64,000 nt of DNA from Lepidodermella squamata (lineage: Eukaryota > Animalia > Gastrotricha), in NCBI GenBank assembly GCA_047495785.1, contig JBLDXI010000028.1:1302001-1366000 (forward strand). The letters run 5' to 3'. The notes under the pieces are model-generated. The model was not told the DNA's origin. It ran no database searches and saw only the letters and a list, made by a program, of their open reading frames with translations. Position numbers and translations under genes: made by a program. This document shows, in pieces, positions 28,533 to 64,000 of the stretch. Every line of letters begins with the position of its first letter. The stretch's first letter is position 1.

Positions 28533-31367
28533 ATGTCGCTGAACTTAACCAAAAACTTGGTAAAAGTAAACTTACGCCATTAAATTTTATTAAAATAAAT
28601 ATTCACAGGGTTCAGCTGGCATGAGTTCAGCACCTTTGATTTTTCAAAATCAGAGCGATTTTCAGCAATACGTCGATAAATCTTGCTCGGACGCAGTGAA
28701 CAGAATAGTTTCTATTTGGCTCGTACAATTACTAACAAATTTGACAAATTATGACCCTACGGCAAATATCACAGCAGCAAATGCGACCAATTTGAGCACG
28801 AATTCCTCTGGAACGAATGTCACAAATACTACTCAATCGGCGAATGTTGATCAGGTCACAGCAATGCTTGATTCGCTATCATCAATAGGCCCACTACTTC
28901 TTCAAAAGGCAATTCTAAAAATGCTAGCAGAAGATATGGGCGTTCAAACAGCAATAGAAGGAAATTTGATAAATAGCGCGAGTTTCAGCACGGCAGTTTA
29001 TGCGAACATGGTGACGCCCATTAAGGACAACAGCAACGTATTTTACCTTTTGGCCATGGGCATTTTCATTTATTTTATGCAAACCGGTTTCGCCCTCATG
29101 GAAGTTGGCATGGTTCGAACAAAGAACACATCGAACAGCTTGTGGAAAAACGTTTCATACAGCTGTGAGTTGATGAAAATAATCATTCATCTTTCATCTG
29201 AATTTTTTACAGTTGCATCCGCCCTTGGTTATTGGCTCACAGGAATGGCGTTTTCGTTCGGCGATAGTCGCGGTCATTTTGCGGGCTCAACTTTCTGGGC
29301 GTTCAAGGATATGCCAACAACTGGGGCGGGCACAAATTTGATGCTATTCTTCTTTGAATACGTGTTTTGCACGACAGCCGGAGCAGTAATGACAGGTATT
29401 TCTCAGAGAAAAAATTCAAGACGTAGGTATATCAAGACTCCTTCAACTAAGGTGCAATCGCCGAACGAGCTCAGTTGATATGCTACATAATTTACACACT
29501 CATCGCTTCAGCTGTCACCTATCCAGTCGTAGTCCATTGGTGCTGGCATGCGGAAGGCTGGCTGGTCCAAGGATTCAAGTACAACATGACAGGATCGGAT
29601 GATTTAGTGACCATTGGATACGAAGATTTTGCGGGATCCGGTGTTGTCCACGTGTGTGGCGGTGTAGCGGCTCTCGTAGCTATCATCTTCGTCGGCCCAA
29701 GGATTGGTCGATTTGGGCCGAACGGTGAAGTCAATGAAATCAGCGGACATTCTGTCACGGTATGAAATAAACCACTCCACATCTGAACTACTGCTATCTC
29801 TTAGCTAATACTCAGCTTGTTGGTGCTGGAGCTATGACCCTCTTCACAGGTTTTCTTGCCTTCAACGCCGGGTCGAAGCTGTCGATTAGCAATGATGGCG
29901 ACACGATCGCGATCAATCGAGCAGCTGTAAACACGATAATATGCGGAACCGGTGGCTTTCTCGTTGTTGGCATTTTGCACCGAATACTCAGCAAAAGATG
30001 GCTAGTTATTCCTATGCTGTGTGGCGGGTTGGCTGGCAACGTTGCGGCCTGCTGCAATTGTCACACCGTTGAAGCTTGGGCTGCATTCTCTATTGGGTAA
30101 TTTTGGGATTTTTGGAATCTGCATAAAAGTTATAAGCTGATTGAAGACTTAAAGAGCTCTGCCCTTCATTTAGAGCTTCGAAAATGTAAAATCAAGAAAA
30201 AGAGACTTACAGTTATGGCCATTTTCAACTATGCATTAAGGCGTCTTATCTATCGACTTTATATTTAACAGAATTTTGGCGGGCCTCATGTTCATGTTTG
30301 CTTCATGGGCACTGCGAAAACTAAGAATCGACGACGCTGCAGACGCTGTTGGAGGTTAAAACGGGCTGAAAGTACTTTTAATTCTTTAATTCTTCTTGAG
30401 TTTTTGCAGTTCATTGGGGAGGCGGTTTTGTCGGAGTATTGGGACTCGCTTTCTTTAAAATCGATGTCGGTGTTCTGTATGCCTGGGACTACCGATCTGG
30501 ACTGGTGAGCCGGCTAAAATACGACCACATTTGGTGTTAATTATTAATTTATGTTCATCAGATTCTTGGCTGGCAACTCCTAGGCTTCACCGTGATATCG
30601 CTATGGAGCGCATCTCACACAGTAAGTGGGTCAAATTTCTTGCTGTCGTGTGTAATTATCTCCTATTATCCTAGTACGTGATCTTCTATATCCTGAAAAT
30701 GTTCAATATGGTACGAGTTGATCCAGAGACGGAGCTACTAGGGCTAGACTACGCCCACGGCCACGAATTGCCTTACCCATCGGAAGCTTACAAGAAGCCA
30801 AATGTGCATGAACCGGAACCTGCTTGCGGTGAGATGGGTGCCTACAATTTGACAGAGGAAGAAAAACTTGAGCTCGCCTATGATCAGCTATTTGAGGAAG
30901 AAATGTCAAAGTATACCGTTGAATATATCAACAAACCAGGCTGGTCACACCCAGTTTTTGGCGGCGTTCTCTACGACTTGAGTTGGATTTCAGTTGTGCG
31001 GTCGCGGAGGAAGGAAATGGAAAAGCGGATGAAAGCTGCACTTATCAAAGCCAACGGCAGCGCTTCTCACACGAATGGTCACGCACTTCCGGTTATGACG
31101 CAACGCAGCGATCTTCACATGGTGGAAAACGGCAATGTTAAGCCTAACTCTGTGCCTATGGCTACATTAGCCCCTGCTGTGAATTCGACCCGATCGGAGC
31201 AAGCCGTCAACACTTCTGAACCCCCAACCCTAATCGATGCGAGTACAAATGTGGCTATGCGGTTCCGCGGTGATTTCAAGTCCTTCCAAGCCAATATGCA
31301 GCCGTCCTATGAAAATGGTGAAGCCGGCCATGGCCTTTCGCATGTCAACCCGAGTTTTGAATACTAA
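28533..31367 (+). CDS. amt: Ammonium transporter paralogue 1 (about 9 exons; long glycosylated N-terminus, long C-tail)
   Basis: FMQTGFALMEVGMVR, GAIAER, HWCW...GWL, DFAGSGVVH, GPRIGRF, FLAFNAGS, DDAADAVGVH, ELLGLD. A probable first exon 28533-28559 splices in frame. Confidence 0.93.
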
Positions 31368-32428
31368 ATATCGATGGACTACATTTTATACTTTTATGCA
31401 TGAAAAACTCACAGCTTGCTCGCGTCTTGCAGGGGCTGATCCAATTTTTATACATCAGTTTTGAACTCAAATGTTATATTGTGGCCAAACATGTCGTTCT
31501 CTATGTAATTTGTAACATTTCGTTGTGCTGATTTCTCATTGTTCACCTGCAAAAGCGACAAGCGGCAATTTTTCAGTTTAAAACTAACTTGAATTTTATT
31601 TCTACCTGTGTTAAAACAAGGATCGTTTAATAAAAAAAAGCCTGTCCGAAACCCGTGGCATCCTCTTTTATCTAATTTTGCGTGGTTCCATCTTGAAAAC
31701 CTTTTAAATTCAAGATCCGTGAATTCGCTCGCGATTTCATTCAGCAAAGAGGTGACTTGCACGCTGATCATGGCTATAATGACTTCAAGATGATAAAATT
31801 GTCGAGCCTTGAGCGTATCCATTAAATAATGGACATCATTATCACAGACATTCTCAAGATTGATGCATTCAACTCGTAAATGTACTAATTTCTTTCCAGG
31901 TCAATGAGGGCTTTCATCGATTTGAACGGTAGCCAAAGCTGTCAAGAAGCTGCATAACATTCAAAGTCTCACTTTTCACCCCGGTGAAAGTGGGCAAGGG
32001 TAGAAAAATTCCCATCATCGATGACCCGGCGTAAGAGCTAAATAGTCAAGTTTTGTGTTTTTATTTCGTCCGATGTTCTAATTACTATATTACGTGCGAA
32101 GTGACTAACTTTCGATAGTTTCGAAGTTTTTGTTCCGGAAACAGTCTGGCATTACACATTACAGCCCACCTGGTAGCAGTATCTATTATTGATGAATTCC
32201 ATTAAAAACCTCTGTTCGAAAATAGCGTTTTTTTATCCACACGAGACAACTTTTCGTACACTCGAGAGACAATTGCGTCATAAAAATTCGCTTCGCACAT
32301 TTTACTGCCTCTTTCTATTAGCTGATACCCTCTTCCTCTTCCTCCCGATTTTAGTGAAGGAACACCATGATTGTTCGCGATTAAATATCGGCAGGTGATT
32401 TTTCATTGTAGGCCTTACTTCTTTACGG

Positions 32429-34588
32429 ATGGAAATCGATTATAACCAAACCGATTTTCGCCTAAGTATTGATTCCGCATGTTACTTGAAGGCTCAAAGA
32501 ATCATCGCAACTATCATTGATAAAGTTCGTTTTTCACTCAAACAGTTTCGTAAAACCTAAATTGTGATGTTTTTAGCTAAATTTGACAGATCGCGAAGTT
32601 CAGGAACCATCACACCTAGCGGCAAGCCTTAAATCGACATGCTATTCGGCTCTTAACAACATCAACGCTGAAGCAGGAAAAGATATAGCAATTTACGGAG
32701 CTGGGTCAAACGCTTTTTTCCTCCTGTTCATGGCCATGAATATTTTCAGTATGGATTTCGGTTTTGCTATGCTCGAATGTGGCCTTATCCGGGAGAAAAG
32801 CTCCGGCAACAGTATGCTGAAAAATTGTCTATATACATGTAGGTTACATCGCGTTTTTAATATTGCAATCTTTACATTCCCTGATCAAGTTACATCCTCG
32901 ATACCTTATTGGCTTTTGGGTTATTCATTGACCTATGGCAAGTCGATTGGAGGATTAATCGGTGATTTGACTTATGTAGCGATGATCGATGAGTCTAACG
33001 GTGTTTTCTGGTTTTTCGAGGTTAAGTCAGCATTCTTTATTGTTAAGATCTTAGTCGAACTTGGATGTTTAGCTTTCATTTTGTCTAACCACATCGGCTA
33101 TCGTTTCCGGTGCAATGGCGGAAAAAGGCCAACTTTCAGCCTACATGATGTTCAACGTAGTTACTTCGGCCATCATCTTTCCAATTATAGCTCATTGGGC
33201 TTGGAATGACGAAGGTTTTACATTGCTGGAATCTAGTCAGCAATATCGTATATTTTGTTAATTTAATAGGATGGCTCAAACTGGGATCAGTATACCAATT
33301 GGACACTTCAAGCGGAACTGACGAAGTGCGCATCGGATATTTCGTAAGATTCCAGTTTGCAAACCATCTTAGGTAACAATTTGATTATAGGATTTTGCGG
33401 GAAGTGGTGTTTGCCACGTAACTGGTGGAATAGCAGGGCTAGGTAACATTTATATGCTTCATCATTACATTTAAACTTAACGAATTGACGCTCCTCGATT
33501 CAGTGTTTATAGCTTTTAATGGGCCTCGAATTGAGCGAATAGGTCCGGATGGAAAATTTCGTTTCTCTGAAATCCCTGGACACAATTTAGCGGTAATTGA
33601 CCTTTCCTTTATCAATATTCTAAAAACAGCTCCTATTTTATTAGTATTTTGTTTACGGAGCAACTTGTTTGTTCTCGAATTTCATCGCCTTCAACGCCGG
33701 TTCACAGCTTTCAATGAACTTGGCAAAGGATCAAATGCCAATCATTAGGGCTACGTCAACCACGGTAACTGCAGGATTTAGCGGCGGCATCACAACAGCG
33801 ATTTACCTAAGACTTTTCCATCGACAATGGTCCCTTGTGGCGCCCTTATGCGCAGCTCTTGCTGGCACGGTCGCCATATGCTGCAGCTGCAGTGTCGTTC
33901 AAAATTGGGGAGCAGTTTGCATTGGGTAAGAAAAGCTGCCGGATCTCTGAGACTGACTAATGTGAATATCTTAGAGTCATTGGGGCAATTGTTAGTCAAT
34001 TGGTTTCTTACCTCATGAAAGTCGCAAAGCTCGATGATCCTGTCGACGCGGTTTCCGTTCATTTCGGTGGCGGATTGGCTGGCCTACTAAGCTACCCGTT
34101 CTTCAAAATCGATGAAGGGATCCTCTACAACTGGGACCGACGGGGTCTCTTGGTGAGTGATGTCCTCTTGGCGGTATTTTCCTTTAGATTTCCTCTTCAG
34201 ATGCTTGGTTGGCAATTCGTTGGCCTTCTTTCTATTATGGCTTACACTGCAGCTGTGACGATCATCTTATGCCTGATCCTCAGGGCTTTCAACATGTTGT
34301 CTGTTGACAGAGAGGCGGAAGAGCTCGGTTTGTGAAACATGATTCCTGACTTCATAACTTCAACGTATTTCCTTTACAGGTTTGACGATAGCGCATGGGC
34401 ACGAGGGCTCAGAGGAAATAGCGTCTGAGCTAATAAAAACCATTAATCTTTTCGGCGAAACTGATAAGGAAATCAGTAGCAAAAAGCCACCCTCATGTGT
34501 GCTACTTGATCTCAGTCGTTTCTCAATTGTCACAGATCTAAGGCTGCGCAAGAGGAAACAGACGCCTTCGGAATCAAGTCAATTGTGA
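32429..34588 (+). CDS. amt: Ammonium transporter paralogue 2 (about 11 exons)
   Basis: [49 protein letters not shown]. All exon phases join into an open frame. Confidence 0.92.
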
Positions 34589-34750
34589 GAAGTTTTCACA
34601 AAATTGAAAAATGTATTGCCAATTAAAATAAGTGAGTGGATCAACATCTACGCAGCTGTATTTTTTAATCTGATACAGCCTCGAGCTATGCTAGCTAATT
34701 ATGATGTAGAAAATGCCTGAGCAGTAAGAGTGTCAATGCATGGATGAAAA

Positions 34751-36745
34751 ATGCTTTCCGACTCTGAAAAATTCCTCATCGAAGCAGGATGCAATGCCAA
34801 AGCGAAAAAGGTGTTGGCAGATCTTTTTCTGAAAGTGATTTTTGTCCATTCCATCTTGAATAAATGTTACTTAGTAGCCAATTTTTTCCAGTTGAACTTG
34901 ACAGAGGAGTCTGTTACGGAGTTAGTTACCGCAGAATTACGGAGAGCTGTTGAGCAAACGAAAGCCAACGATGAAAAGCTGCTTACGACTACGCAGAATG
35001 TGTTTTTCCTCCTCCTGACAGGAATCTTCATTTTTAGCATGGATTCAGGATTCGCGCTACTCGAATGCGGTCTCGTCCGTCAGAAAAATTGTGCCAACAG
35101 CATAGCGAAGAATTGCATCTACTCGTGTTGGTACACTTGACCTAGGTTCGGTAATCACAGCTAATTTGTGCCTCCATAGTTTCAACAGCCATTCCTTACT
35201 GGTTGGTTGGGCATTCTATAACATACGGCAAATCTATCAATGGGATTTTCGGGGATCTGAGTGATCAAATTGGCGGTTCTAATGGTGTTTTCTGGTTCTT
35301 TGAGGTTGTTACTGAACTCCTTGAGGCTTTTACTTAAACTGCTGTCTACCTTAGTATTCTTTTTGTCTGACAACCTCTGCGATTGTTTCTGGGGCCATTG
35401 CCGAAAAGGGTCAGTTGGTTGGCTACCTGTGTTACACCTGGGTAACTTCTGCATTGATCTTCCCAGTCGTTGCTCATTGGACATGGAACGAAGAGGGATG
35501 GCTGCGAATGGGGGCTATTTATCACCTCGCTGATGGGCCACAACGGATAGGGTTTATAGTGAGCATTTTCTCCCTGGAGGAAGCTCTTGTATCTGATTCT
35601 TTAAAAAGGATTTCGCTGGCTCAGGGGTATGCCACGTTGTTGGTGCAGCTTCTTCATTAGGTAGGTTACGATCCATTAGTTGTACGGTTTGCCAAGTTTT
35701 TTTTTTTACTTTTTTTTACTAGTCTTTGTGATTTTCAATGGTCCGAGGATTGATCGAATAGGACTAAGAGGAGAATTTCAAGATATCAATGGCCACAATC
35801 TCCAGGTAAATTTGCTTTCATTTTCGCTTTAAAGTATGATCTGGTGTTCAGTTTTTAACCATTGGATGCATGCTGCTTTTCTCGAGCTTCATCGCCTTCA
35901 ACGCCGGATCAGAAATGTCCATAGCCAGAGCTAAGAATCAGATGTCTGTAATCCGAGCTGCCTCGACAACCGTCGCCGCTACTTTAGGAGGCGGTCTAAT
36001 CGCCATGGCCTACCACCGAATCTTCAAAAAACGATGGTCTCTGATCCCGGTCCTATGCTGCTCGTTAGCCGGAACTGTAGCCATCTGCTGCAGTTGCAAT
36101 GTCGTGCAAAACTGGGCTGCGTTTATCATAGGGTTCGAAAGATCTTAAAACCACCCAAAAAACAATTGTCAATTTCGAATTTTTCAGGGTCATTGCTGGG
36201 CTGGCTTGCATGTCAACATCTCAAGCCATGAAAAGGATTCGATTGGATGATCCAGTCGATGCTGTCTCCGTCCACTTTGGCGGCGGAGTGATCGGCCTGG
36301 TGTGCTATGCCTTTTTCAAAATCGACGAAGGGATTCTCTACCATTGGGACCGAAAATCATTTCTTGTTCGATATTTGTTCTCCCTTCAAAGTACGGGATT
36401 AATAGTTCATTTTTAGATGCTAGGCTGGCAAATGGCTGGACTTGTATCAATCGTTTTTTACACTGGATTCGTGACGTTTCTGCTATGCCTAATCCTGAAA
36501 TATTTCAACCTTCTAACGGTCGACGAAAATTCTGAAAAAATCGGTATTAATTGAGGCAATTTTCTATTTAATAGCCCTAATAATGTCATTTTTCAGGGCT
36601 AAGCGCATCCTATGGACATGAGACGGAGAACAATTTTGAAATGCTCTCAACGCCACATATCAATTATCACGAGTTGCCTGTCGCCGCAAGAATCCGTCTA
36701 AGAAAAAACGCCGTCAGACCTAATAATGCTGCTTCAACGTCTTGA
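34751..36745 (+). CDS. amt: Ammonium transporter paralogue 3 (about 10 exons)
   Basis: [49 protein letters not shown]. Confidence 0.92.
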
Positions 36746-36939
36746 GGCGAATAAAAACTGACATTTTTGCAGAGCGTGTCACGCATTTTCAAGCCTTACG
36801 GGATCAATTTTAGTCAATAAATTCGAAAAAATTTACCTATATGCCTGAGGGCCTACTCAGCGTGGTTTCCGCTTTTCAAAAGTAAGACGCGCATCACTTG
36901 ACAATAATCATCGCGCTCCCTCACTTTATACATCATAAA

Positions 36940-39760
36940 ATGATTGTCAATAACACTTCCTACATTGACTCGCAATGTGCAATAAAAGCCCGCAAAATTT
37001 TGGCTCAGCTTATCGCTCAGGTTCGGCCTGTTTCAACTTTGAAAATTTCGGATTTTTCTAAAGCAAATTTTTTTTCCAGCTCAATTTGACTTCTATCGAC
37101 TTGGACGCAACTCAAGACCCGGCGGAAATAGCGAGAATAATCAGGGAAAGATGTCTTTCAGCCGTAGCGAAGGCAACGTCTGAGCAAGCTGAGGATTTGG
37201 AGAAATTCGGACGTCGCTACAACGCGTTTTTCTTATTCATTCTTGCGCTGTTCATCTTCAGCATGGATTTCGGTTTCGCCCTACTCGAATGCGGGCTAGT
37301 TAGGAAGAAAAATTCCGCCAATAGCATGCTGAAAAATCTCTTCTATTCATGTGAATTTCCATAATTTTATTTTGTCTTTACTTTAAACATTGTGATTTTC
37401 TTTTTGCAATTTATCATCAGATTCAAAAAACAACTGAAAAATTCACTGTAATAGGGTACGGCGACAAAACAGCAACTGCGTAGAACAGCAAATGCGACAA
37501 AACAGCAACATTTTTTCATTTCGCGACAAAACAGCGAGAACCAGTTACGTAAAAGAAGCATCGTGTTTCTGCTGTTATGTCGCAATGCGAAAAAGTTGCT
37601 GTTTTGTAGCGTTTGCTGTTTTGGGTATTTGCTGTTATGACGGTGTTATTGACTGTAAATGCCCTATTACAAGTCTGCCTCGTATTTGAGCCTTGATTTT
37701 TAAAAAAAAATTATATATTTTTGCGCAGTCGACAGGAAGAATCAAATTTCGAAATTCCCCGGAAATTTTCGGAAACTTCATGATTAATTTAAAAAATTCA
37801 AATTATTTACCATTGAATTTTGGGTAATTTCAGTAGAAGACCTATTTATTAAAATTATTTCTTATCGATTTATCGAATTTCCGTAAATTGATTTTAAATT
37901 TCCAACAGTTACGTCTTCAATTCCTTACTGGCTATTTGGTCACTCTTTGACCTATGGAAAATCGATCGGTGGACTGTTCGGCGATATGACCTACGCTGCT
38001 GAGACATCAGAGTTTGAAAATGGCGTATTCTGGTTTTTCGAGGTATTTTCATTCGAAAATTAAATTGGAAAATTACCTTACCTAGACTTTCCCATAGTAT
38101 TCCTTCTGCTTAACGACTTCAGCCATTGTTTCCGGTGCTATAGCAGAGAAGGGGCAGCTGATTGCTTTCATTTCTCACACAATCCTTACTTCGAGCTTGA
38201 TTTTTCCTGTCGTGGCTCATTGGGCCTGGAACGATGAAGGTGACTTCCTAATTAAACTCGACAATTTTCATTACGTTTTTTTTCTTTTTAGGTTGGTTGA
38301 GGAAGGGACAAATGCTGGAAATTGAGACTGATGAGGGAAAGCAAACAGTTCACTTTGGATACTTTGTGAGTTTCCTAATTTTTTTAATTCTCATTATTCC
38401 AAATTTCCAAACAGGATTTTGCGGGTTCGGGTGTTTGCCACGTTGTTGGAGCAGTTGCCGCTTTAGGTATACCTTATTTTATTTATTTATTTTTATTTAA
38501 TTTTCGGATATAGTTTTCATCTTTTTCAACGGCCCTCGAGCGGATAGAATCGGACCAGATGGAAAATTACTGCCTGACATTCCCGGCCACGACATTACAG
38601 TTTGTTAAAAATGCAAAATCAAGCAAAAATTTGAAAATTCTGCTAATTTTCAACAGCTGTTTGCCAACGGTTGTCAAAGCCTGTTTTCGAACTTTGTCGC
38701 TTTCAATACTGGATCGCAGTTATCGATGCGTCGTGTCAAAGACCAAATGCCTATTGTTCGGGCGACAGCTACGACAGTTTCTGCCGGTCTTGCCGCTGGA
38801 ATTTTCGCAGCATTTTACTACCGATTAGTCCACAAAAAATGGTCGCTAATTCAGCCTATGTGTTGCGCTTTGGCTGGAACTGTGGCGATTTGTTGTAGCT
38901 GTAGCGTGGTTCAAAATTGGGCAGCTCTTTGCATTGGGTTCGTAAATTCTATCAATTGATATTACTCAAAAAGCATCAGAATTTTTCGAAACGCGAAAGA
39001 GATTTATTCCGAAGCCCCTTAAATCATTTTGAAATTTTTTCCTGGTGTAATTTTTTTACTGAACCTTTATTGAACCTCTGACCTATTTTTTCTAATTATT
39101 GCAGTATTTTAGCCGGGATCACGAGTCTTGTAGTATCTAATCTGATGAAATTTTTGAGGTTGGATGATCCAGTTGACGCCGTGGCAGGTTTGAAATATCA
39201 AATATTTTTAAACTTTTTTCAATTTTATTGTTACAACAGTACATCTCGGTGGGGGTGCGATCGGCCTTATTAGCTACGCATTTTTCAGAATCGATCAAGG
39301 AATAGTTTACAACTGGGACAAGCGCGGAGCTTTCGTAATAAACTTTTCTCATTTTTTCTCAAATTTTTAAATACATTTTTTAGATGTTGGCTTGGCAGCT
39401 AGCAGGTCTTGTCGCTATAACGCTCTACACAGGCCTCCTCACAACGATTTTGTGCCTCACTTTGAGAAAATTCAACCTTCTAACAGTCGACAGAATCAGC
39501 GAGGCAATAGGTGGGTGTTTGCTACCCTATAGCAATCTTCGTAAATACCTATACCTTTAATTTAAGGTTTAACGATCGCCCACGGCCATGAGGACGGTGA
39601 CGTGTTAGACGATGCAGCAGTTTGCGAGGCAATCGATCAAAAACTAGCGCAAATTCAAACAAGTTTTTCAAACAATAACTCAGTTGAAAAGTCTGCCCTA
39701 GATTTCAGTTCTGTATCTGTTGTTTCCAAAATTCGGCGAAGGATTGTCATGAAAGCATAA
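36940..39760 (+). CDS. amt: Ammonium transporter paralogue 4 (about 12 exons)
   Basis: [49 protein letters not shown]. Confidence 0.92.
37447..37671. mobile_element. Fold-back MITE in Amt4 intron 2
   Basis: Terminal TGTAATAGGG / CCCTATTACA; internal AAAACAGCAAC repeats mirrored by GTTGCTGTTTT. Confidence 0.65.
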
Positions 39761-39911
39761 ATAATAAAATAATGTAGCTAAAAATGCGATGGGCCTTTCG
39801 TGTTTGAAGGGGCGTATTTGAGTGAGATTGCTAATTAAAAAAAAGGTAAGTCTGTCATCTTGCCGATCAGCATTTCTTATTACTATCTTTATAAAAAAAA
39901 CTGCTAATAGA

Positions 39912-41998
39912 ATGACTCAAATTTCCATCAATGCTACACAGCTTGAGCAAGTTCGCAAAGTTATCGAGGCAACGGCAAATAAAATGGCTGAAAATATATT
40001 AACAAAGGTGGGTCAACAAATTGCTGGCTATTTTTATTGAAATTATTTTCTGCAGCTGAAGAATCGAGTTTCGGCAGAACTATTGAATTCAACGGCTGGA
40101 ATTTTCCCGAATCCTGATGTCGAACGAAATATGAACGCGTTCTTCCTGCTCATAACTGCCTTCAGCATTTTTAGTATAAAAATCGCAATTATTTAGCAAT
40201 TTTCAATTGAAATATTCCTAAATCTAGGCATGAATTTCGGATTCGGTCTACTCGAAGCTGGGCTGGTTCGGAAGAAAAATTCGGCGAATAGTATTTTGAA
40301 AAATGCTTCTTATTCCTGTTAGTTGATTCGCAATTTCTCGCCAATTTTTCAATTTTTTTCTTACAATTTTCAGTGATTGCCATAATTTCGTGGTGGCTAA
40401 TTGGATTTTCGATTGCCTTTGGAAAATCTCAATACGGTGTGGTCGGATCGCTAGAATACGCTGCCAGACCAGGTCCGCGTGGAGCTTTTTGGTTCTTTGA
40501 GGTAAGCTAAAAAAAATCCGTTCATATTGGATTATTTTATAAAATCATTTCAAGTACTGTTTTGCCGTAACACCGTGCGCTATTGTCAGCGGTGCGATCG
40601 CGGAAAAAGCTCATTTAATGGCGTTTGTCACATTCACGCTGATGTCGACCAGCGTGATGTACCCTGTCATAGCTCATTGGAGCTGGAACGCAGGTGGGTG
40701 GCTAAAAAATGGCCTAATTTACCAAGCGAACGGAGCGAATTCAACTTTCCAAGTCGGTTACCAGGTTGGAATACAAATATTTTTCATAAAAAAATTAGAA
40801 TCTCAATTAGGATTTTGCTGGTTCCGGTGTTTGTCATATTGTGGGAGGCGTTGCGGCTCTCATTTTCGCAATATTTTTGGGACCTAGGATCGGCCGAGTT
40901 CAAAAAGATGGGACTTTTCGATCGATGCCTGGACATTCTCTACCCGTATTTTATGTTCAATTTCAATGATATTAATCATCGCAATTAATATTCATAGTAT
41001 TTCTGCTTTGGTTGCATAAATCTCTTCGTCATGTTCATCGCTTTTAATTGTGGTTCGGAGCTTTCGATCACGAGGCGAGAAGATAACCTACCCGTTTCGC
41101 GCGCCGCAATTAGCACAGTTTTCGCGTCGATGGGCGGCTTCATTACCGGGGCTATCGTCAACCGATTCAAGTTGAAAAGATGGTCAGTGGCTCCCACCCT
41201 TTGCAGCGGCCTCACGGGGACAGTCGCAATATGCAGCTGCTGCAACTCTGTCGAACCGTGGGCAGCGTTCATAATAGGGTAAAAATTCGAAAAATTTAAT
41301 TAAAAATTTAGATTCAAATATTTCGAAAACAGGGCTGTCTCAGCGCCTGTTTACCTCACGTTATCAAACTGCCTAGAGCGGCTAAAAATCGACGACGTAG
41401 TCGATGCGGTGCCTGGTAACAAAATTAAAAAAAAGTATTTAAAATACCATTTTAATTTGAAAATGTTGTGTCTGCTTTATACTCAAGTTCATTTGGGTGG
41501 TGGAATCACGGGTCCGATTTTGTTGGCTTTTCTTCAAAAAGATCGCGGAATTATCTACCAAGCGACAAAGAAATCTGGCCTGGTAATTAAAATTCCAAAA
41601 AATTTGAACTCGATTGATATTTTCGCTTTCAGATTCTGGCATGGCAGCTCGCCGGGATAATAACCATAATTATTTACTGCTCTATTTTAACGAGTCTTCT
41701 TTGCCTTGCTCTTCGCAAGTTCAAGTTACTGCGAGTTTCGCCCAAGGAAGAAATTGAAGGTAAATGAATTTTTTTCTTCATTTTTTTATTAATATTTTTT
41801 ATAGGTCTCGATTTAACTTTCGGTCATTGTATCGATAGCGGCAATTCATCTCCTGTCGTTTTAAAGCAGAAACCGGGCTTGTCACAATTTTCCCTGGCTA
41901 CATTGCCCAGTAATTTACGCCTGACCTCGAACAGCTCGAGCGCAGCGCTTATCACCATGCGCAATCGGCGACTAATCTCCCCGGCTAAACCATCGTAA
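39912..41998 (+). CDS. amt: Ammonium transporter paralogue 5 (about 11 exons)
   Basis: [61 protein letters not shown]. Confidence 0.92.
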
Positions 41999-43359
41999 AA
42001 ATTTCACCACCAGGCAGAAAAATAAATCCCAAAATATACACACCGTTAATCTGACACTTTTCGATAACAAATTGTCACTCAGGTGATAAGTGCTCTCTCG
42101 AGATTTTCCGGAATAAAATCGTAATTTTCCGCTTGAGTGACTGTTGTTACATCTTGGCGCATCATGATTGATGATGACTTCCGACTTCAAAGATGAAGAC
42201 ACCGATATATATATCTAGCTAACGACGCCGAAAAAGCCGGAACGGATGCGGAAAAGTGCGGCGGCGCAAAATTACGGCGGTGTCATTAAGTGCGCGGCAT
42301 TGCGCAACGACCGTCGCGGGGTCATTAGAGCCATATACGATTGCACCACATCGATAGACGTCAATCATTAACCATCTGGGCGCCCAGCAATATCGGAAGA
42401 AAAATCTAGATAGGATGAAAAAAAATAACTCGGTTGGGGTTGTTCGATGAGTGTCGCGCGACGTGTGACAAGTGTCATTGATGCGCGCAGTTGGAGGTGT
42501 CTCGTGCGCGCGCTCATCAGAGCGTCGAAAAGCGCGGAGCGAAGACAATAAACGCGAGGTGATGCTCTACGACTGATTGATACCACTGATAGTCAGGCCA
42601 TCTTCACTTTCGAGGTGATACCTACTCGCACAGCAGTCGATGAAACACCTCATTGGCCAAAATACATCATCATCAGGGTGAATAAACCCGGTCAAGCGTG
42701 AGAGTAATAAAAAATCGAGCCCAGGTGAAATTGGGTAAACATTTCCATCCAGGGTTGTCGGTACCAGAAAGACGGTGGTCAGAGATGCGGCCGCACTTTG
42801 TAGGTCCGTTGTCAAACGCGCGCGACTCGGCCTTTGACATGTGTGTGCGACATCCGAGTCGGGTGACAGGTGCGCCTTTTTGACGCATCCAAGGCGGCCG
42901 CGTCACGCAAAATCACTTCAAGAGTAACAAGCAGGTGCCACCTTGACTAAATAGGTTAATGAACACATGCTGACATGAATTGATTAAAATTTGATTGAAA
43001 TATGGAAATAAAATCATGAATAAATTACGCAGCAGGTATCCCGGTTCCCGAGTAATCCCGAATATCCCAGTAAATCAGTAACACGATGGAACCGGCCATA
43101 TAATGAAAAAGATGTCATTCAGAGAGTTCCTCTCTCAATGGCGGATCCTGAAGACATGTTTTTCACGTTACAGGCGTATTTTTTCGTTATTTTTTCATTA
43201 TTTTTTCATGGTTCCATTTTGGTACCGCATTGAGTCGGATTTAATGACCATGAGACGTCAATTTGACACAGAATTCATGAGAACCGGCACCTTGTTCGGC
43301 GACATGCGTCAGCCAGGTGCTTCGTTACCGCTGACCGTGAATGTGCGCGAATGAGCGAG

Positions 43360-43495
43360 GGGGCGGAGCTTAGCGCCGCGTGACGCGCGCTGATTCGCCG
43401 CCGCCCTTGAACCACGTGCGCCGACCAATGAGCGCGCGCGCACGCGATACGCGCACTATATAAACACGCACTTTACCCTCCAGTTCCGTCATCAC
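43360..43495 (+). promoter_or_regulatory. TATA/CCAAT/GC-box promoter of the orphan gene
   Basis: GGGGCGGAG 43360, TGACG 43381, CTTGAA 43406, CACGTG 43413, CCAAT 43425, TATATAAA 43457, with an Inr-like sequence about 30 nt further and the ATG at 43558. Confidence 0.7.
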
Positions 43496-43557
43496 TGCAC
43501 TCAGCTCTTAATTTGATATTTCGCATTTCCGATTTAATTTAACTACAACCTTCTGCA

Positions 43558-44208
43558 ATGGCTGCTATGTTCCGCCCTCGCAACCCGACCCCGTCGGCTG
43601 CCACCCGTTACCGTGACGACGACGTTTTCGATACTTCGTTCGACTGCGATTCTGTCTTCGAGGAAGACTTCGACATGGACGGCGACTGCGATCTTGCCGT
43701 TTTCATGGCACCAGTCGCCGAGCCTGTCGCTGTTAACCGCCGCTCTCGTCGCTTCCAAGTCCCGACCGTCACCCGTGACTACACCCCGTGCTGGGCCCCG
43801 ACTCGCCCTCGCAACCCGACCCCGGCTCGTGCTTCTCTCTCTAAAGGTAAATTGAAAAACAACCTTAAACTCGGCATGATTACTAATTTTTTCTTGATTA
43901 CTTCAGAATCGACCAAGTCGACTACAACATCTCGCCCGCGTAACCCGACCCCGGTTCGCGCTAAGAAGTCTGTCGTGAAGTCAGGCGCCGTTTCGAAGCC
44001 GATCAGCCTCGTTGTCAAGGCCAAGCAAACGACCGTCGCCGTTGTTGCGTCTCGCCATCCGACGTCGTTCTCGCGCCATTCTTCATCCGGCTTCTCGTCT
44101 TGCTCGTCACCCGTCGCCTCGCCATCGCCTCGCCTCGTTCTAGCGTGTCGTGACACCCTGATCAGCAACGCGTCTGTGTTCAGTTTCCGCCGTCACTTGT
44201 TCGCTTGA
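43558..44208 (+). CDS. Orphan, probably disordered S/P/R-rich protein with 3x RPRNPTP; exons 43558-43847 and 43908-44208
   Basis: Strong codon bias; AT-rich 60-nt GTAAAT...TTCAG intron; upstream core promoter; AATAAA near 44373. Confidence 0.75.
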   Translation: MAAMFRPRNPTPSAATRYRDDDVFDTSFDCDSVFEEDFDMDGDCDLAVFMAPVAEPVAVNRRSRRFQVPTVTRDYTPCWAPTRPRNPTPARASLSKGKLKNNLKLGMITNFFLITSESTKSTTTSRPRNPTPVRAKKSVVKSGAVSKPISLVVKAKQTTVAVVASRHPTSFSRHSSSGFSSCSSPVASPSPRLVLACRDTLISNASVFSFRRHLFA

Positions 44209-45190
44209 ACATCGATTCTTTGTCAACCCCTTGATCGCTTTGTGCTCATTTTTGTAAATATTTCGTCATTTTTTATTCATTTCTTGCTTCGCTTGTTTGA
44301 TATAACGACGTAAATGCATGTACATATTTCGAAATTTATTATATATTAATTTGAAAATGAGTTATTAAACGCAATAAATATTCGATGGTATAACTGATTG
44401 GTTTTTATTACGAGGTCACTAACAAAAGGCATTTTCCGAATTTGCAGTTTGGTTTCAACTAATCCAAATAGTAATTATTTTTTATCATCTCGATGATATG
44501 GTAACCACATTTTCCAAGAATTAGTCGCTTCCTGGTGGAAGTTTTCAGAAGTTTTTGGAAGTTTTTGCTGCATAAAGCGGTTCATTATTCGCTCTCGTCA
44601 CGCAACAAACGATCAGCCTATTTCCCGGCATTATCGGTAATTTTCACCCGGATTAACTCCGAACTTCCGCTTCTACGTCAAGCCCTGATCCGGACATGAC
44701 CCACTTGATGAGGCTAATAAATAACCCCGTCATCCCTTCGTTGCGCTTGACATTGCGCGTAATCTCCTGATGACGATATAGGTTGCAACAAGTTGGCGCC
44801 AAAATGGAACCGGGTTGCAAATCTTGATAGGCGAATCTAGACGAGACGGCAATTGTTTTAATATTACTTTCCTCAAAGATCTCCGCTCGCGATCTTTAAG
44901 GGCGCGCGCGCGCTCATTGCAGCTACCTGTAATTAGTGCGCCAACCGAGTGCGCGGTCCGCGATTTGAGCGACACGGTGACCGCAATTTCGGTACCGCGC
45001 ACTTGACCGTGTAATTAGACCAGTGCGCGCGCCCGCCTTGATTTCATCGACCGCCGTCTTGCGCTTCAATGCGCATTTGTTATACAACAATAATACGACG
45101 CATGGAGCAGTCCGGAAAAATCATTGGAATAATTTAAATCCGAAAAAATATGAACGAGACAATAAAATCAGATCGTAAAAATAAAGCGCA

Positions 45191-48100
45191 ATGATGATAT
45201 CAAATAAAGTCGAGCCCGAGTTTTCAAATACTATGCTAAGAATCGGCGGTTTTCACCGCGATACCGTGTTTGACCGGATAATACAGGGTCATAATTCGGT
45301 GAATTTAACATCACACGTGTTCGGGTCGATCAGCATACGAGACCTGAAGCCGGCTTTTATGGAGTTGGTTCACGATCCTGAGGTTCAACGGACTTTAATT
45401 CGGCATGTTAAATTCGAGGGTGTACAACTAGCGGCGCATAGCTCGGCATTTTTTCTCGTAGCAATGGCCATTCAAGTTCACGGTATACCAATAATTAAGA
45501 CAATTTGACGATTTTTATGTTTTGAATGTTAACAGTCATGCAGGCCGGTTTTGCGCTGATTGAAGCCGGTTGCGTTCGATCGAAAAGCGTGACGAATACA
45601 TTTTGGAAAAATTGCGTTTGCGCCTGTAAAATTTTGATTTTTTTTTCTAATTTTCCTTAATTTTTTCTCTTCCTCTCCCAGATATTGCGACAATAGGATT
45701 TTGGTTAACTGGCTACGCAATCGCTTTCGGACCTTCACTCGAAGGATTAGGAATTATTGGTACCGATTTTTGGGCCTTCACTAACCTCAACACATCTGAA
45801 TACAGCCAATGGTTTTATCATGTAAATAGGGAAAATATTCAATAATTTACCTAATTTTTTAACATTTTTTGTTAATTTAGTGCGCATTTTGCGCTACCGC
45901 GTGTACTATCGTTTCAGGTGAGCAACATTTTGATGACCACAGAAAATTTACATTTTTACTAAATTAATTTGTTGAATTTTCTCGATTTTCTTGATTTTTA
46001 TTTGATAGGTGCCATAGCCGAACGAGTTCATGTATTGTTTTTCGTTGTCCTCACCCTCGTAAATTCATCCTTCACGTATCCTCTCGTCGTTCACTGGGTA
46101 TGGTCAGAATGCGGATGGCTAAAACGAGGCGTTCCTTTCATTAACGGCAACCGGGCAACGATTCTATGCACTGAATCAATTCGAGAGGCGAAATACACGG
46201 TCGGATTCGAAGACTTCGCCGGAAGTGGGCCAGTTCATGTTGTAGGCGGAGCTTCAGCTATGGCTGCTATTATCATGCTTGGCTCGAGACGGGGTCGATG
46301 GCAGAGCTCGAGACGCGAATCGATTGGATTAGTCACTTTTCACGAAAATCATATACAAGGCCACTCAATCACGGTAAAATCACGCGATTTATGTGATAAT
46401 TTACCCGAATTTTCATGATTTCTAGCTGACGGCACTTGGCTTTATGATTCTGTCAGCTGGTTTTGTGGCTTTTAATGTCAGCTCCAACATGCAACTTGGT
46501 AATCAGCTCAATGACGATGCAACTATTGGCAAAATAGCTACTAATACAGGTATCAATCAATCAATCAATTTATTTGCAAACTTCGTTCACAGGACTAGAA
46601 GGGCACGCAGGCCTCTTACACTAACCCGATGCAATAAGATTTCCTTTACAATATTTCTTCAGATTCACGCGGTACAGATTTCGTTTTACGATATTGTTCT
46701 TTATATCAGCAGGTAAATTATCGTCAAAGTTAAATACGGTAGTCGGCAATCGATTCCAATTGTTTACTGTACGGTTCAAAAAATAGTTCTTATAAATAGG
46801 TTTGGTGGGATTTTTGCACTTCATATTCGGATTTAGAACAGAGAAACGAAAACGATGACCTCGATTGTTATTCAACAAAAATTTTATATTATTAGAGATA
46901 GATGTTTTAACAGACCCATTTATTATTTTGAAAAGGAAGCAAAGATCGTATATAAGGCGCCGTTCTTCGAGAGACACTAGCCGAAATTTTTTTAGACGCT
47001 CGGAATAGGACGGGCGCGAAGGATCGTAGGGTGATAAATTAAGAGCACGGCGAGTAAAGTAAGATTGCAATTTTTCTAATTTGTCAATTTCATTTTTAAA
47101 CCAAGGTGACCAGATGCAAGTACAATTCTCTAGCAACGGGCGAACATATGTACAGTAGGCACGTACTAACGTCTCAGGAGACTGACCTTTCAGAGCACGT
47201 AGTATCAGGTTTGCACGTAGGTAGGCTTTAGAAACAATCGAATTAATATGGGCTTTGAATTCTAGCTTTTCATCAATAAGAAGACCCAAGTCTTTATAGT
47301 TGAGACATCTTTGAAGCAAGTTTCCCCCTAGGTAGTAGGAAGATTTTGGATTTTTGAAGCCAAGATGAAGAACCGCACATTTGTCAATAGAGAGCTTTAG
47401 TTGCCAAGTTTCAAGCCAGACAAAGATGTTTTCAAGAGATAGAGATAGACGTTCAGAGAGAGATGAATCATTTTTACAAAAGACTATGTATAATTTGCAG
47501 TCGTCAGCGAACAGTTTAATGGAGACACCTTCAGGTAGGATATCGGTAAGGTCATTAATGTAGAGCAGAAATAACAGAGGGCCCAGAACGGAACCCTGAG
47601 GTACGCCACTGGTTACGCAAATTTCATCGCTTAGGGTTCCGTTGACATTGACACGTTGGGTACGATTAGTAAGATAGCCAGTTTAGAAGATTACCATCAA
47701 CTCCAATAGCTTTAAGTTTTATTAAGAGTTTCCGATGGCAAACAATGTCGAAGGCCTTAGCAAGATCTAGGTAGACTATATCCGCAAATTTCATGCATTC
47801 AAAGGCAAAGGTCCAGTCAAGCACGCATTCAAGCATTTGAGTAGCGGGTGATTTAAGTCGCATGAATCCATGTTGATCCGCAGAAATAATGCTGTGATAT
47901 AAGAGGAAGTCGAGGATTTTATTTCGAATTATTGTTTCGAGAATTCGAGGTAGACAGGGTTGCCCTCAGATTTTTTTCATAATTTTGACCTTAAGTGAAT
48001 CCAATTGGTTGTAGCATATTCTAGTCTAAAATCGGTATGCAAATCGCTTTTAAAACACGAGTAAAATTTGCGTAAAAGGTCCAATTAGCATATGCAAATG

Positions 48101-49579
48101 ATGTGTCCAAATTCAGAGGTTACTTCACGTATTTCTTAAAAATCAAAGTGAACTACGAAATTTCTCAAAATTTACCTGTCGATTCAGAATCTTCACCCCA
48201 AGGTTTCACAATTTTTCCAAAATTTTCAGACGAAAACATAATTTAAAAAAATTTAAAAACGTGCTTGGTCAAAGTTACAGTATTTAAATTTAATTTTTTG
48301 AATATTTTCTGAAAATATAAGATTAATTTATCGCATTTTTTAGTGCTTGGAGCCTCAGGTGGTATGCTGATATCTACAGCTGTAACGCTGATAGTTACCC
48401 GAAAGTGGCTAATTTTGCCGGCATTATTCGGCGGACTAGCCGGCGATGTGGCCATGGGAGCCGGTTGCAACGTCTACGACGCCTGGGGCGCCTTCTTGGT
48501 CGGCATTTTAGGCGGCATTGTCTACATGACAATTTCCAGGTTCATGGTCAAAATTCGACTTGACGATGTTGTAGACGCAGTTGCAGGTAAAAATTAAAAT
48601 GAATAGAAAATTACCGAAATTTCGGGTTCAATTTTATAGTTCATTTGGGCGGCGGCGTGACCGGCCTGATTGCTCTAGCATTTTTCCATCCTGATACTGG
48701 AATTTTATACAAATGGAATTCCCGATCAATATTGGTGCGTTTTAAACTAATTTTACCAGTATTTTCTTATGATTGTTTTGAGTAGCTTTTGTGCTGGCAA
48801 TGTGTTGGAACATTTTCAATAGCAGCCTGGGCCTCGATGAATACAATGGTCGTATTTTTCTGTCTGACTTGCTTCAAAAAACTACGATTCAGGTCTCGGA
48901 TCGAAAACCGAGGCATGGACTACGCTCATGACCACGAAATTTGCTACCCACCGAAATCGAACCCTTGGCAAGCTTCTGATATTGTCGAGATGAGCGGCAG
49001 TGAAAAGCGAAGAAATGCAATCGTTTCACAATTCGGCGAAAGTGACAAAAATGACGAAATTATTAACGACGAGATGACTTGTGAAATCGTCGATTTAAGT
49101 AAGGTTCTAATCAATTTAAAAAAAAATTTAGAAGAGAAATTCAGATTTTATTGAAATTTTACTATTTTTCAGGCGAAAAAATTCCTGAAAATGTTGCGAC
49201 CGAGCTGTCTCACCATCTATACGAAAATACACCTCTAGTAAGAAAGGAGCCGCCTAAAATTCTGGACCTAGCCTCACGACCTATTCCGACCCCGCCCGAA
49301 AATTCCAAAATTGATCAAGCGGAACAGTTCGTGAAGCCAACCAGGCGTGACGCAGCCGCGATGACTGATAATTGGGACGAAACTCTAAAAATCACCGTTT
49401 CACCGGGGCTGACCCCTGTTACCTCGAAAGACCTGCCTAACTGTGACAAAATGTCTCGACACGCTTCGATGAAATCGCGTCCGGAGACGCCAACAGCTAC
49501 GGTTCGCCGTCTAGCCGACGGAACGTTCGACATCGAAGCGCAATATGTCAATGTTGCAATTCAAGTCACAGAATTATGA
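45191..49579 (+). CDS. amt: Ammonium transporter paralogue 6 (about 10 exons; LINE in one intron; long C-tail)
   Basis: VMQAGFALIEAG, GAIAER, DFAGSGPVH, FVAFNVSS, DDVVDAVAVHLGGG, ENRGMD. Confidence 0.9.
46553..47947 (-). mobile_element. 5'-truncated CR1/L2-group LINE with one frameshift
   Basis: QHGFM, YLDLAKAFD, SGVPQGSVLGPLLFLLYINDL, LFADD, KDLG, YVRPLLE. Frameshift near 47680. The 3' end is AAATAAA plus an (ATTG)n tail. AGGTA occurs on both flanks. Confidence 0.92.
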
Positions 49580-51070: not shown

Positions 51071-53749
51071 ATGGTACAACGATTCATCAGTCAGCATTCA
51101 TCCCGGGAAAATGGCACAAATTACACGGAAAAATTGATGCCGCCTGATTTACAGCTCGACGTCCGGAACCGATTGCTGGAGCTCATCGTCAACGACACGG
51201 CAGTTCAGGATGCAGTTGCGGACTTGGTTTGGAAATCGCCGATTTTCAAGGCCTTTCGGGACAATTCTAACGCATATTTCCTCATCGCTATGGCTATTCA
51301 AATTCACGGTAATTGCCGTTTTCGTTCGCCTAAATTTTTCGAAAATAATTTTGCAAAAATAGGGTATTAGTATGTTCATTTGACCTTTAAACTCGGATTT
51401 TCAGTTCATCAGTTATTTTAATGAATTTTTGGAATTTGAACAAAATCGAGCTAAGGATATATCATGAGACGACGAAATGTACTCGTTAAAATGTTCTTTG
51501 TTATTTCCGAATTATAGTTATGCAGTATGGTTTCGCTCTACTTGAAGCAGGCTGTGTTCGAGGCAAAAATGCAACCAGCAGTATGTGGCGAAACTGCGTT
51601 TGCGGTTTCGTGGCCGCTTTCGGCTTTTGGCTGTTCGGATTCCCACTAGCCTTCGGAAAATCAGTTGGAGGATTTTTGGGCACAACTTACTGGGCCTTCC
51701 ACAACATGCCCGACTCGACGGAACGGTACAACGCAAACTTTTGGTTCTTCCAGGTAATTTGTTGGGGAAATCTTGGGTTGGGGTTAGGGTTAGGGTTAGG
51801 CGTGGACTAGGGTTAGGATTGGGTTAGGTTAGGGTTTAAGGCTGGGTCTTAAAATTGGAGATTTGAAACTGATTGAAATAATATTGTACGGAATTCAACG
51901 ACGTTTGGTACTGAATTCAATAATTTGGGAATGATTTCATATCCCAATTTTCTAATTTACTTATTTGTAATTCATTCGATTTTTTCCGCCGAATTTATAG
52001 TACGCTTTTGCGACCACGGCTTCGACAATAATCAGCGGGGCGATTGCTGAACGAGGTCATGCTGTGTTTTTCCTCTTCTCTTCGTTCGTTATGTCATCTC
52101 TTACGTACCCGATTGTGGTCCATTGGTCGTGGCACGATGCTGGTTGGCTGAAATTGGGCACAAGGGGAGAAGAAATCGGTTTCATCGACTTTGCTGGAAG
52201 TGGCGTTGTCCATATGACTGGAGGAGCAGCTTCACTGGCCGCTATTATCCTACTCGGGGCTCGAAGTGGCCGATTTACTTCCAACCACATTGGCCAGCTC
52301 GAATCGTTTGTCGCTCATTCACCGACGGTGAAGAATTAGAAAAAGAATCGAGAAAAAAATTGAATTTTTTATGTTTATTCAGCTAGCGGCGCTAGGGTGT
52401 TTAATCCTATCAACAGGCTTTGTGGCCTTCAACGCTGGTTCGCAGCTTCACGTTGATGCGATCGGAGATTCTCATGCCATTGGTTATGCCGCTACTAATA
52501 CCATGTTTGTTACATTGCAATTTTTTCGATTCATGTTTCAAATTTTTTCCAAAAACAGGCTGGCTGGAGCTGGTGGAATGCTGTCTGTAGCTATTTTCGC
52601 ATTCTGGTAATTTTTTCGCCGCGCCACGCAAATTAATTTATTAAACTTATCTCACGAAAGGCGAACGCGGAAATTCCCATTACTACCACCATTGTGCGGC
52701 AGTTTAGCCGGAAATGTATGGTTTTTCTCAACTTTATTTGAGGTAAAAAATTGAAGAAATAATACATTTAGGTGGCGATATGTGCTGGGTGTGATGTTTT
52801 GACAACTTGGGCCTCAGTAGCCATCGGATGCGTTGCTGGCCTAGTCTACATTTTCGTGTCTTGGCTCGTTGCCAAGATGAAACTGGACGATCCTGTTGAT
52901 GCTGTTGGAGGTATGATAGGAAAATCACACAAATCTTGAGGAAAAATCCAAAAAATTTCCTTATAGTTCATCTCGGGGGAGGACTAACCGGTCTGATTGC
53001 TACGGCTTTGCTGCACCCTGGAATCGGAATATTTTATCATTGGAACATTCGATCTGCACTCGTAAGTTTATTTACTTTGAACTGTCAAAATGAGGCGAAT
53101 CAGGCATGGCAAATCACGAAAGTGGCTCAGTAAAGACCCTTTGAGTGGGGTACTGTTGGAAAGCCCGAGAAAAGGCAAACCTGGTTGTCTATAATAGACA
53201 TCGATCTGCTGCTAAAACGATGCATCTGGGCCTAAATTGAAGCAAGAATCATGAGGAAATAAAATATTTTCAAAAAGCTCGGGCTATCCGCTTTTCGCAC
53301 AGGCTATCCAACGACACCCAACTCAATCCACCCTTTTAGCATTTTGAATCTCATCTATCAAAATAATATGAACTTCACCTGAAAATGCGAATTTTGTGGA
53401 TTATCTGCGTTTTTTTTAGTTTTTGGGCTGGCAAATAGTCGGAGCTGTGGTCATTTTCGCTTGGTCATTTGTGCACACCCTGGTCATATGCGCCATTCTA
53501 CGGTACTTCAAGCTACTCCGAATGACGTCGCCCATTCCAAAAACTCTTCCATCCTTCGACGGAGCGCATAACGACGCCGAAGAAATCGGAATGGACGAAG
53601 CTCACGGCCACGAGCCGGCCTATCCCGAACTCGAATTAACCGTCGCTAGACTCAGCACGTTCTCCGCAAAACGAAATTCATGCCGATGCGAAAGTGACTC
53701 GACAAAAGACGACAGTTGCCCAACAACATGCGCAAGTGGACACATTTGA
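51071..53749 (+). CDS. amt: Ammonium transporter paralogue 7 (about 9 exons)
   Basis: VMQYGFALLEAG, WFFQYAF, GAIAER, DFAGSGVVH, FVAFNAGS, DDPVDAVGVHLGGG, EEIGMD. Confidence 0.92.
51773..51840 (+). repeat. Degenerate (TTAGGG)n-like tract in an Amt7 intron
   Basis: GGGTTAGGGTTAGGGTTAGG...GGTTAGGTTAGGG. Confidence 0.8.
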
Positions 53750-56787: not shown

Positions 56788-56843
56788 ACCAGGGACCAGG
56801 GACCAGGGACCAGGGACCAGGGACCAGGGACCAGGGACCAGGG
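56788..56843 (+). repeat. (ACCAGGG)8 tandem repeat
   Basis: Eight perfect 7-nt units. Confidence 0.95.

Positions 56844-62428: not shown

Positions 62429-64000
<1,572 letters not shown>

Follow-up and report, generated by a model that had tools for sequence, protein, structure and literature searches.

The stretch of DNA analysed here (the window) comprises 64,000 nucleotides (nt) of the gastrotrich Lepidodermella squamata, positions 1302001-1366000 of contig C28 (JBLDXI010000028.1) in the assembly GCA_047495785.1, which totals 121 Mb in 151 contigs. We found that it very probably carries a genuine tandem array of seven intact ammonium transporter (Amt) genes of the AMT clade (Amt/Mep/Rh superfamily, Pfam family PF00909) in a compact genome with small introns. 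They arose by old duplications at the DNA level, as part of a radiation of 15 or more genes that is specific to the lineage, and have been retained by purifying selection. The copies are designated c1-c7 in their order on the plus strand, and other contigs of the assembly are given as C1, C17, C33 and the like. A preliminary description of the window had reported seven same-strand Amt genes within about 25 kb, and full models were obtained for all seven, from 28621 to 53749 on the plus strand.

A whole-assembly Pfam scan returned 52 exon-sized matches to PF00909, 25 of which lay on the plus strand of the window at about 29.0-54.9 kb. Exon-level matches above the gathering score were found for all seven genes, and single open exons reached up to 76 bits, with E-values down to 2e-21. 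The window was also scored in all six frames with a profile of 476 positions made from 99 full-length metazoan Amt proteins, and the matches formed seven collinear series, each spanning the whole profile. For each gap, the frame-keeping GT/GC...AG pair with the best profile score was taken as the junction, N-terminal junctions were set by conservation among the paralogues, and three in-frame introns were recognised within the models. Each spliced model gave one full-length match of 402-486 bits, running from about position 5-14 to position 416-448 of the profile, with E-values of 1e-123 to 3e-149 against the metazoan Amt profile. Profile and Pfam E-values this low exclude a chance match.

All seven models run from ATG to stop with no internal stop codon and no frameshift, as the preliminary description had held, and their 63 introns are all of the GT-AG type (median 54 nt; 54 of the 63 measure 62 nt or less). 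The reading frames are 1.5-2.3 kb long, with 7-11 introns apiece. The extent first proposed for the array, 28533-53749, was right at its end and not at its start, the ATG of c1 lying at 28621. The models are as follows.

28621-31367, plus strand: c1, 8 exons, 748 amino acids, 486 bits over profile positions 9-442; exons 28621-29164, 29213-29395, 29452-29759, 29816-30096, 30272-30354, 30410-30504, 30562-30621, 30675-31367
32429-34588, plus strand: c2, 11 exons, 546 amino acids, 402 bits; exons 32429-32524, 32577-32838, 32890-33020, 33073-33214, 33270-33343, 33391-33442, 33504-33592, 33645-33925, 33975-34152, 34201-34327, 34380-34588
34751-36745, plus strand: c3, 10 exons, 505 amino acids, 418 bits; exons 34751-34834, 34892-35126, 35180-35304, 35355-35558, 35609-35660, 35723-35805, 35852-36132, 36188-36365, 36417-36543, 36597-36745
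36940-39760, plus strand: c4, 12 exons, 539 amino acids, 411 bits; exons 36940-37020, 37080-37350, 37909-38042, 38098-38239, 38292-38365, 38415-38466, 38514-38599, 38657-38937, 39105-39187, 39240-39334, 39384-39510, 39567-39760
39912-41998, plus strand: c5, 11 exons, 518 amino acids, 433 bits; exons 39912-40007, 40056-40173, 40228-40317, 40374-40501, 40555-40764, 40811-40945, 40998-41278, 41333-41415, 41488-41582, 41633-41759, 41805-41998
45191-49154, plus strand: c6, 9 exons, 584 amino acids, 437 bits, coding sequence intact; exons 45191-45482, 45536-45625, 45682-45821, 45881-45917, 46009-46373, 46426-46549, 48344-48586, 48640-48734, 48786-49154
51071-53749, plus strand: c7, 9 exons, 529 amino acids, 453 bits; exons 51071-51308, 51518-51753, 52001-52327, 52383-52504, 52559-52606, 52661-52715, 52772-52910, 52967-53061, 53420-53749

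The 3′ end of c6 is uncertain, and splicing on into an open reading frame (ORF) at 49151-49579 is possible. The c1 product has an N-terminal extension of about 125-140 residues, rich in N-x-S/T sequons, and a C-terminal tail of about 200-230 residues; across the copies, the N-terminal extensions hold 1-8 such sequons.

Residues were numbered as in mature Escherichia coli AmtB (sequence from NC_000913.3), to which the models were aligned via the profile. The claim that both pore histidines are present in every copy was confirmed, H168 and H318 being kept in seven of seven. Furthermore, F107, W148, F215 and S219 (Phe gate, recruitment site) and D160 were identical to AmtB in all copies, each of which also carries the motifs DFAGSG..H and DD..DA..VH, and the profile match covers the entire 11-helix core of Amt. 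By inference from the family, the product of each copy would fold as this core and assemble into a trimer, with NH4+/NH3 carried via the twin-histidine pore behind the Phe gate and the Trp/Ser recruitment site.

Protein identity over all array copies was 32-57%. It reached 53-57% among c2, c3 and c4 and fell to 41-44% when c5, which has diverged furthest within the c2-c5 clade, was compared with these three; c6 and c7 shared 47%, and c1 was 37-41% identical to the other copies. These identities and the trees described below agree on the grouping into c1, c2-c5 and c6-c7 that had been drawn earlier. Over 429 ungapped codon columns, nonsynonymous divergence (dN) was 0.26-0.71 across the 21 pairs, and synonymous divergence (dS) was saturated in every pair, being undefined or above 2.2 by the Nei-Gojobori method (NG86). 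Saturated dS, these dN values and the intact frames together indicate old copies and purifying selection, which has acted on each of the seven for most of the time since they arose. The idea of an old, selectively kept expansion therefore stands, with frames and splice sites intact and with the genes of a related species nested inside the radiation (see below). A dN/dS value per paralogue, which the preliminary description had called for, was obtained only as a bound: it averages roughly 0.1 or less for c2-c4, the youngest pair (dN 0.26), and saturation of dS in all pairs precludes a per-copy value. Intron positions are common to the copies, indicating duplication at the DNA level and not retrocopies; an extra intron, placed between G and W of the WNDEGWL motif, occurs in c2 and c4 only, and these two are sisters in the tree.

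We found that the genome contains 15 full AMT-type loci and one partial locus, in addition to four Rh loci. Those outside the window are listed here.

C43, C26, C19 and C17: one near full-length AMT-type locus each
C1, 3091536-3096923: two near full-length AMT-type loci, about 2 kb apart on the same strand
C11, 557046-584006: two near full-length AMT-type loci, about 25 kb apart on the same strand
C33: one partial AMT locus
C13, 1263598-1264700 and 1272740-1273720: Rh-type pair, RhAG/RhCG-like
C42, 5051020-5051570 and 5055179-5055907: Rh-type pair, RhAG/RhCG-like

The pairs on C1 and C11 indicate that local duplication of the Amt family is not limited to the window. The four Rh loci had RhAG/RhCG as their best solved relatives (E 1e-64 to 5e-78) and scored low on the AMT profile. 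The phylogeny with metazoan Amts that had been proposed was built by maximum likelihood with 59 metazoan Amt references, and it recovered the three array lineages. All 16 AMT loci of the genome formed one clade apart from the 59 references, on its own long stem, with a support of 100 in the Shimodaira-Hasegawa-like approximate likelihood ratio test (SH-aLRT). Within it, c2-c5 were monophyletic (100/99), a clade known only from this window; c1 was sister to the C17 paralogue, with 69% identity; and c6 branched first in a group with C43, c7 and C33. Named database relatives were taken for one family member, the paralogue on C43 that groups with c6 and c7; the best of them came from molluscs, cnidarians and echinoderms, carried the annotation 'putative ammonium transporter 1' and were 36-43% identical. 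By these relatives, and by their place in trees made up of Amt sequences only, the array copies are assigned to the AMT clade and not to Rh or MEP.

The array thus sets three old lineages side by side. The first is c1, whose sister on C17 was dispersed later; the second is c2-c5, which expanded in place to four genes; and the third is c6 and c7, with relatives on C43 and C33. The notion of the array as a stand-alone special system had to be given up, given that its seven genes are about half of the 15 or more that radiated across the genome and that a related species has a tandem AMT pair as well. The functions first suggested for the array, namely excretion in ammonia-rich habitats, exchange with symbionts, sensing and heterotrimers, gained no specific backing from the analysis. 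An animal origin fits both the neighbouring genes and the best matches. An intronless HSP70 was 74-78% identical to proteins of molluscs, arthropods and tardigrades and 83% identical to a metagenome protein, with no rotifer among the 120 matches listed, and the Amt comparison likewise pointed to no close sequenced relative.

Genes of this related species were found in metagenomes. The ENA contig L013 carries GCN1, TMEM18 and further genes ordered as in window positions 1-14155, followed by a c1-like Amt with 64-77% identity to c1 per exon. The sequence at 14155-28600, about 14 kb between the GCN1-TMEM18-PAS block and c1, is absent from this syntenic contig. On two short contigs from the same samples, L021 and L022, a head-to-tail pair of c7-type AMT genes is separated by about 630 nt. 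In the trees, the c1-like gene of the relative was sister to c1 plus C17 (100/100), and its tandem pair was sister to C43, c7 and C33 together, within the c6 group (100/96-97). The genes of the relative thus nest inside the radiation, indicating that the c1, c6 and c7-type lineages predate the split of the two species, as does that of c2-c5 by its position in the tree. Tandem duplication of AMT genes is therefore recurrent in the group that contains both species. Contigs L012-L015 (ENA ERZ23486787, ERZ27333047, ERZ23486764 and ERZ27332993) all end about 100 nt past the last Amt exon. The break points of these four independent assemblies fall within about 650 nt, as would fit a repeat or paralogous sequence downstream.

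Orthologues of c2-c5 were also sought. When a c3 exon was compared with 1.84 billion representative proteins, three matches had E <1e-10, the best at 48% identity, and this best match was an exon-sized ORF belonging to the c1 orthologue of the related species. Two metagenome scans at the Joint Genome Institute (JGI), one with an alignment of c2-c5 exons and one with an alignment of c1-type exons, found nothing. None of these searches yielded a c2-c5 orthologue. A word search with c1 exon 1 (a query of 260 residues) was empty as well, which is an artefact of its length window, the c1 protein having about 748 residues, and does not speak for absence.

Several observations weigh against reading all seven copies as working transporters under selection. 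A Kyte-Doolittle count, too rough a measure to be of much use, gave 7-11 hydropathy peaks per copy and not a clean 11. Saturated dS yields constraint only as a long-term average, so that recent loss in one copy is possible. Copies c2-c5 keep only 70-76% of 98 near-invariant columns (those at least 93% conserved in 99 references), with the C-terminal motif among the changes, and these losses make their transport competence less certain. For the Amts of this genome as a whole the proportion kept is 69-85%; among the reference proteins the median for the same columns is 99% and the lowest value 86%. Finally, c6 intron 6 has a very young retroelement directly against its donor site, where it may interfere with splicing.

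46552-47946, minus strand: non-LTR-type (non-long-terminal-repeat) retroelement fragment with a (TTGA)n tail, antisense in c6 intron 6, with a further repeat of about 300 nt after it

Intron 6 of c6 measures 1794 nt, and the element begins 2 nt after the donor GT at 46550; the donor together with the element reads CAG before the splice point and GTATCA after it. The fragment is 97-99.5% identical to copies on C42, C19, C20 and C12, indicating that the insertion in c6 is very recent and that the element family was recently active. An ORF within it (46621-47319, minus strand) had no Pfam match.

On this evidence one or more copies, most plausibly c6 or one of c2-c5, might be recently dead or dying and intact only for want of time to decay, a reading that we regard as unlikely while giving it some weight. 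It draws on the fresh insertion 2 nt inside c6 intron 6 with its changed donor context, on the many near-invariant residues lost from c2-c5, and on the c3 exon search, in which no transcript-derived protein of at least 50% identity appeared among the 1.84 billion representatives. The last point is uninformative, however, because the species is apparently missing from that protein collection (even the C43 paralogue had a best match of 43%). The GTATCA donor of c6 lies within the range of donors elsewhere in the array. Moreover, all seven frames, all 63 pairs of splice dinucleotides and all of the pore residues are intact despite saturated synonymous sites, which speaks against such decay.

We also considered whether c2-c5 form a specialised subfamily, namely ammonium or amine sensors (transceptors) or regulatory subunits of heterotrimers, possibly co-transcribed. 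The four copies share changes that are not found in c1, c6 or c7: Q24D/N, R122K, V167C, W365Y and F374C. V167C adjoins the first pore histidine, and G211, four residues before F215, is replaced by N, S, N and M in c2 to c5, respectively. In the C-terminal motif (AmtB R384, E390, G393, D395 and Y404), c1, c6 and c7 keep R384, G393, D395 and Y404. The corresponding residues in c2-c4 are S or T at 384, T or S at 395 and E, N or D at 404; c5 keeps R384 and D395, and its position 404 is unaligned, Y404 being counted as lost across c2-c5. Changes adjoining the first pore histidine, close to the Phe gate and within the cytoplasmic C-terminal motif suggest that c2-c5 probably differ in regulation or kinetics, and these substitutions at near-invariant positions are the sole hint of specialisation.

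The sensor or subunit reading can call on these shared changes (V167C, R122K, loss of G211, W365Y, F374C and loss of Y404, with R384 and D395 also altered in c2-c4) and on the close packing of the four genes. In addition, the best solved matches of a c1 exon were sensor-type Amts (Ks-Amt5 6eu6, and 8qj3/8qpf; E 1e-15 to 6e-13), by a small margin and with an exon that is not from c2-c5. Such bacterial Amts have fused signalling domains. By contrast, no added signalling domain was seen in c2-c5, whose short C-terminal tails match no family, and the array genes as a group are without a recognisable extra domain, their likeness to the sensor type being confined to the Amt core. The recruitment site, Phe gate and twin histidines of c2-c5 are intact, as in a conducting pore. 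We therefore consider it improbable that c2-c5 act as sensors or regulatory subunits. The packing of the four genes is summarised here.

34589-39911, plus strand: spacer-bearing stretch of the c2-c5 block, with three very short stop-to-ATG spacers of 162 nt (c2-c3), 194 nt (c3-c4) and 151 nt (c4-c5)

An AATAAA or ATTAAA signal lies 2-35 nt past the stop codon in each of these spacers. The spacer between the unrelated neighbours GCN1 and TMEM18 is similarly short (about 200 nt), suggesting that the spacing of c2-c5 may merely reflect a compact genome. An operon was therefore not adopted as an explanation, spacers of about 150-200 nt being usual between unrelated genes too and each c2-c5 spacer having its own poly(A) signal. 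A bolder form of the proposal would make c2-c5 a previously unseen AMT subfamily, one lacking any orthologue among the 1.84 billion representative proteins, in which a Cys adjoins the first pore histidine and both the Phe-gate helix and the C-terminal coupling motif have been reshaped. Its members might be regulatory or sensing subunits or have changed substrate or gating, might form heterotrimers with one another and might constitute one tightly packed four-gene expression unit; we consider this, too, improbable.

An array made by the assembly itself, whether by the collapse or expansion of repeats or by the serial joining of haplotypes, is extremely improbable. The collinear C33 copy described next does imply that the assembly holds diverged duplicates or alternative haplotype segments, but copies that are 32-57% identical in protein, with introns unlike in number and length and with different repeats, cannot be haplotypes or mis-assembled repeats of one gene, and no near-identical copy of c1-c6 was found on any other contig of the assembly.

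The right end of the window (52352-57106 and 61786-64000) has a collinear copy at C33:680000-699999 with 90-95% DNA identity. This copy begins inside c7 intron 3. Its counterpart of c7 exons 4-9 is 92% identical, keeps all splice sites and has no stop codon; the two differ by 3 amino acids in 263, with dN 0.005, dS 0.16 and a ratio of 0.03. Amt exons 1-3 were not found within about 9.6 kb upstream of the C33 copy. This copy may represent a second haplotype or a homeologue that has diverged and has its breakpoint in c7; a chimeric gene is another possibility.

AMT and Rh genes generally occur together in animals, most of which have several AMTs, and vertebrates have Rh only (PMC4814505). Expansions of ammonium-transporter families are reported for bdelloid rotifers and for land gastropods (land snails) (PMC12804077), and an amplification of Amt1 for Pocillopora corals (PMC10236652), so that lineage-specific expansion of Amt is a known kind of event. 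The L. squamata case resembles these in that the family is enlarged in particular invertebrate lineages whose genomes are prone to tandem duplication. It differs in that those reports give family counts and, in the passages covered, contain neither a locus-level array of seven genes from three old lineages nor a subfamily of the c2-c5 type.

Compared with metazoan Amts such as Amt1 of molluscs, cnidarians and echinoderms, Caenorhabditis elegans amt-1 to amt-4 and Anopheles AgAmt, the array copies share the PF00909 core, the twin histidines, the Phe gate, W148/S219 and D160, as well as a predicted extracellular N-terminus with glycosylation sequons. They are unlike them in forming their own long-stemmed clade, in an identity of 36-43% (taken for the C43 paralogue) and in keeping the lower share of near-invariant columns given above. 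For an animal, a family of at least 15 copies, 7 of them in one array, is large. Plant AMT1 families have 5-10 genes, some in tandem, and heterotrimers and C-terminal trans-activation are known for them (AtAMT1;1/1;3). As in plants, the family here is a multigene one of the AMT clade with putatively subfunctionalised members, and c2-c5 differ at the conserved cytoplasmic C-terminal motif; unlike in plants, whose AMT1 proteins serve uptake, the expansion took place independently in another kingdom and the role is presumably excretion.

For a tandem array of seven maintained AMT-clade genes, the most likely role would be ammonia excretion and handling, split by subfunctionalisation among tissues, stages or conditions in which the different copies would be expressed. 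The presence of 15 or more AMT-clade genes, seven of them in a 25-kb array, in addition to the four Rh loci suggests that many specialised transporters may share in ammonia handling. Among the lineage-specific Amt expansions reported for animals, the locus is a further, well-resolved case and fairly ordinary in kind. Copies c2-c5 offer natural variants at almost invariant positions, beside H168, close to the Phe gate and within the C-terminal coupling motif, and the view of the Amt family is unchanged unless they work differently.

The array has as its neighbours in the window GCN1, TMEM18, a PAS protein, a dimethylglycine/sarcosine dehydrogenase-like gene, a RhoGAP and a DEAD-box helicase. 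Features placed more closely are given below, together with two repeats inside array introns.

20734-21252 (GcvT-like domain) and 22185-23129 (DAO domain), minus strand: dimethylglycine/sarcosine dehydrogenase-like gene
17468-18190, minus strand: ORF of a Trypsin_2 peptidase
37450-37645: dispersed repeat of about 190 nt with matches on both strands, like a miniature inverted-repeat transposable element (MITE), in c4 intron 2 (558 nt, 37351-37908); at least 40 genome copies
51776-51950: dispersed repeat of about 170 nt in c7 intron 2 (247 nt); at least 40 genome copies

A neighbouring flavin adenine dinucleotide (FAD) oxidase was considered as an ammonia-producing partner of the array and was rejected, the gene being an ordinary dimethylglycine/sarcosine dehydrogenase-like one. 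The gap between c5 and c6 (42000-45190) is 3.2 kb long and comparatively rich in G+C (49%). It holds an ORF of 216 amino acids (43558-44208) in which the motif RPRNPTP recurs and which matches no Pfam family, and a part of about 280 nt has 71%-identical copies on C42 and C12. The genome copies of the c4 and c7 intron repeats are 78-89% identical.

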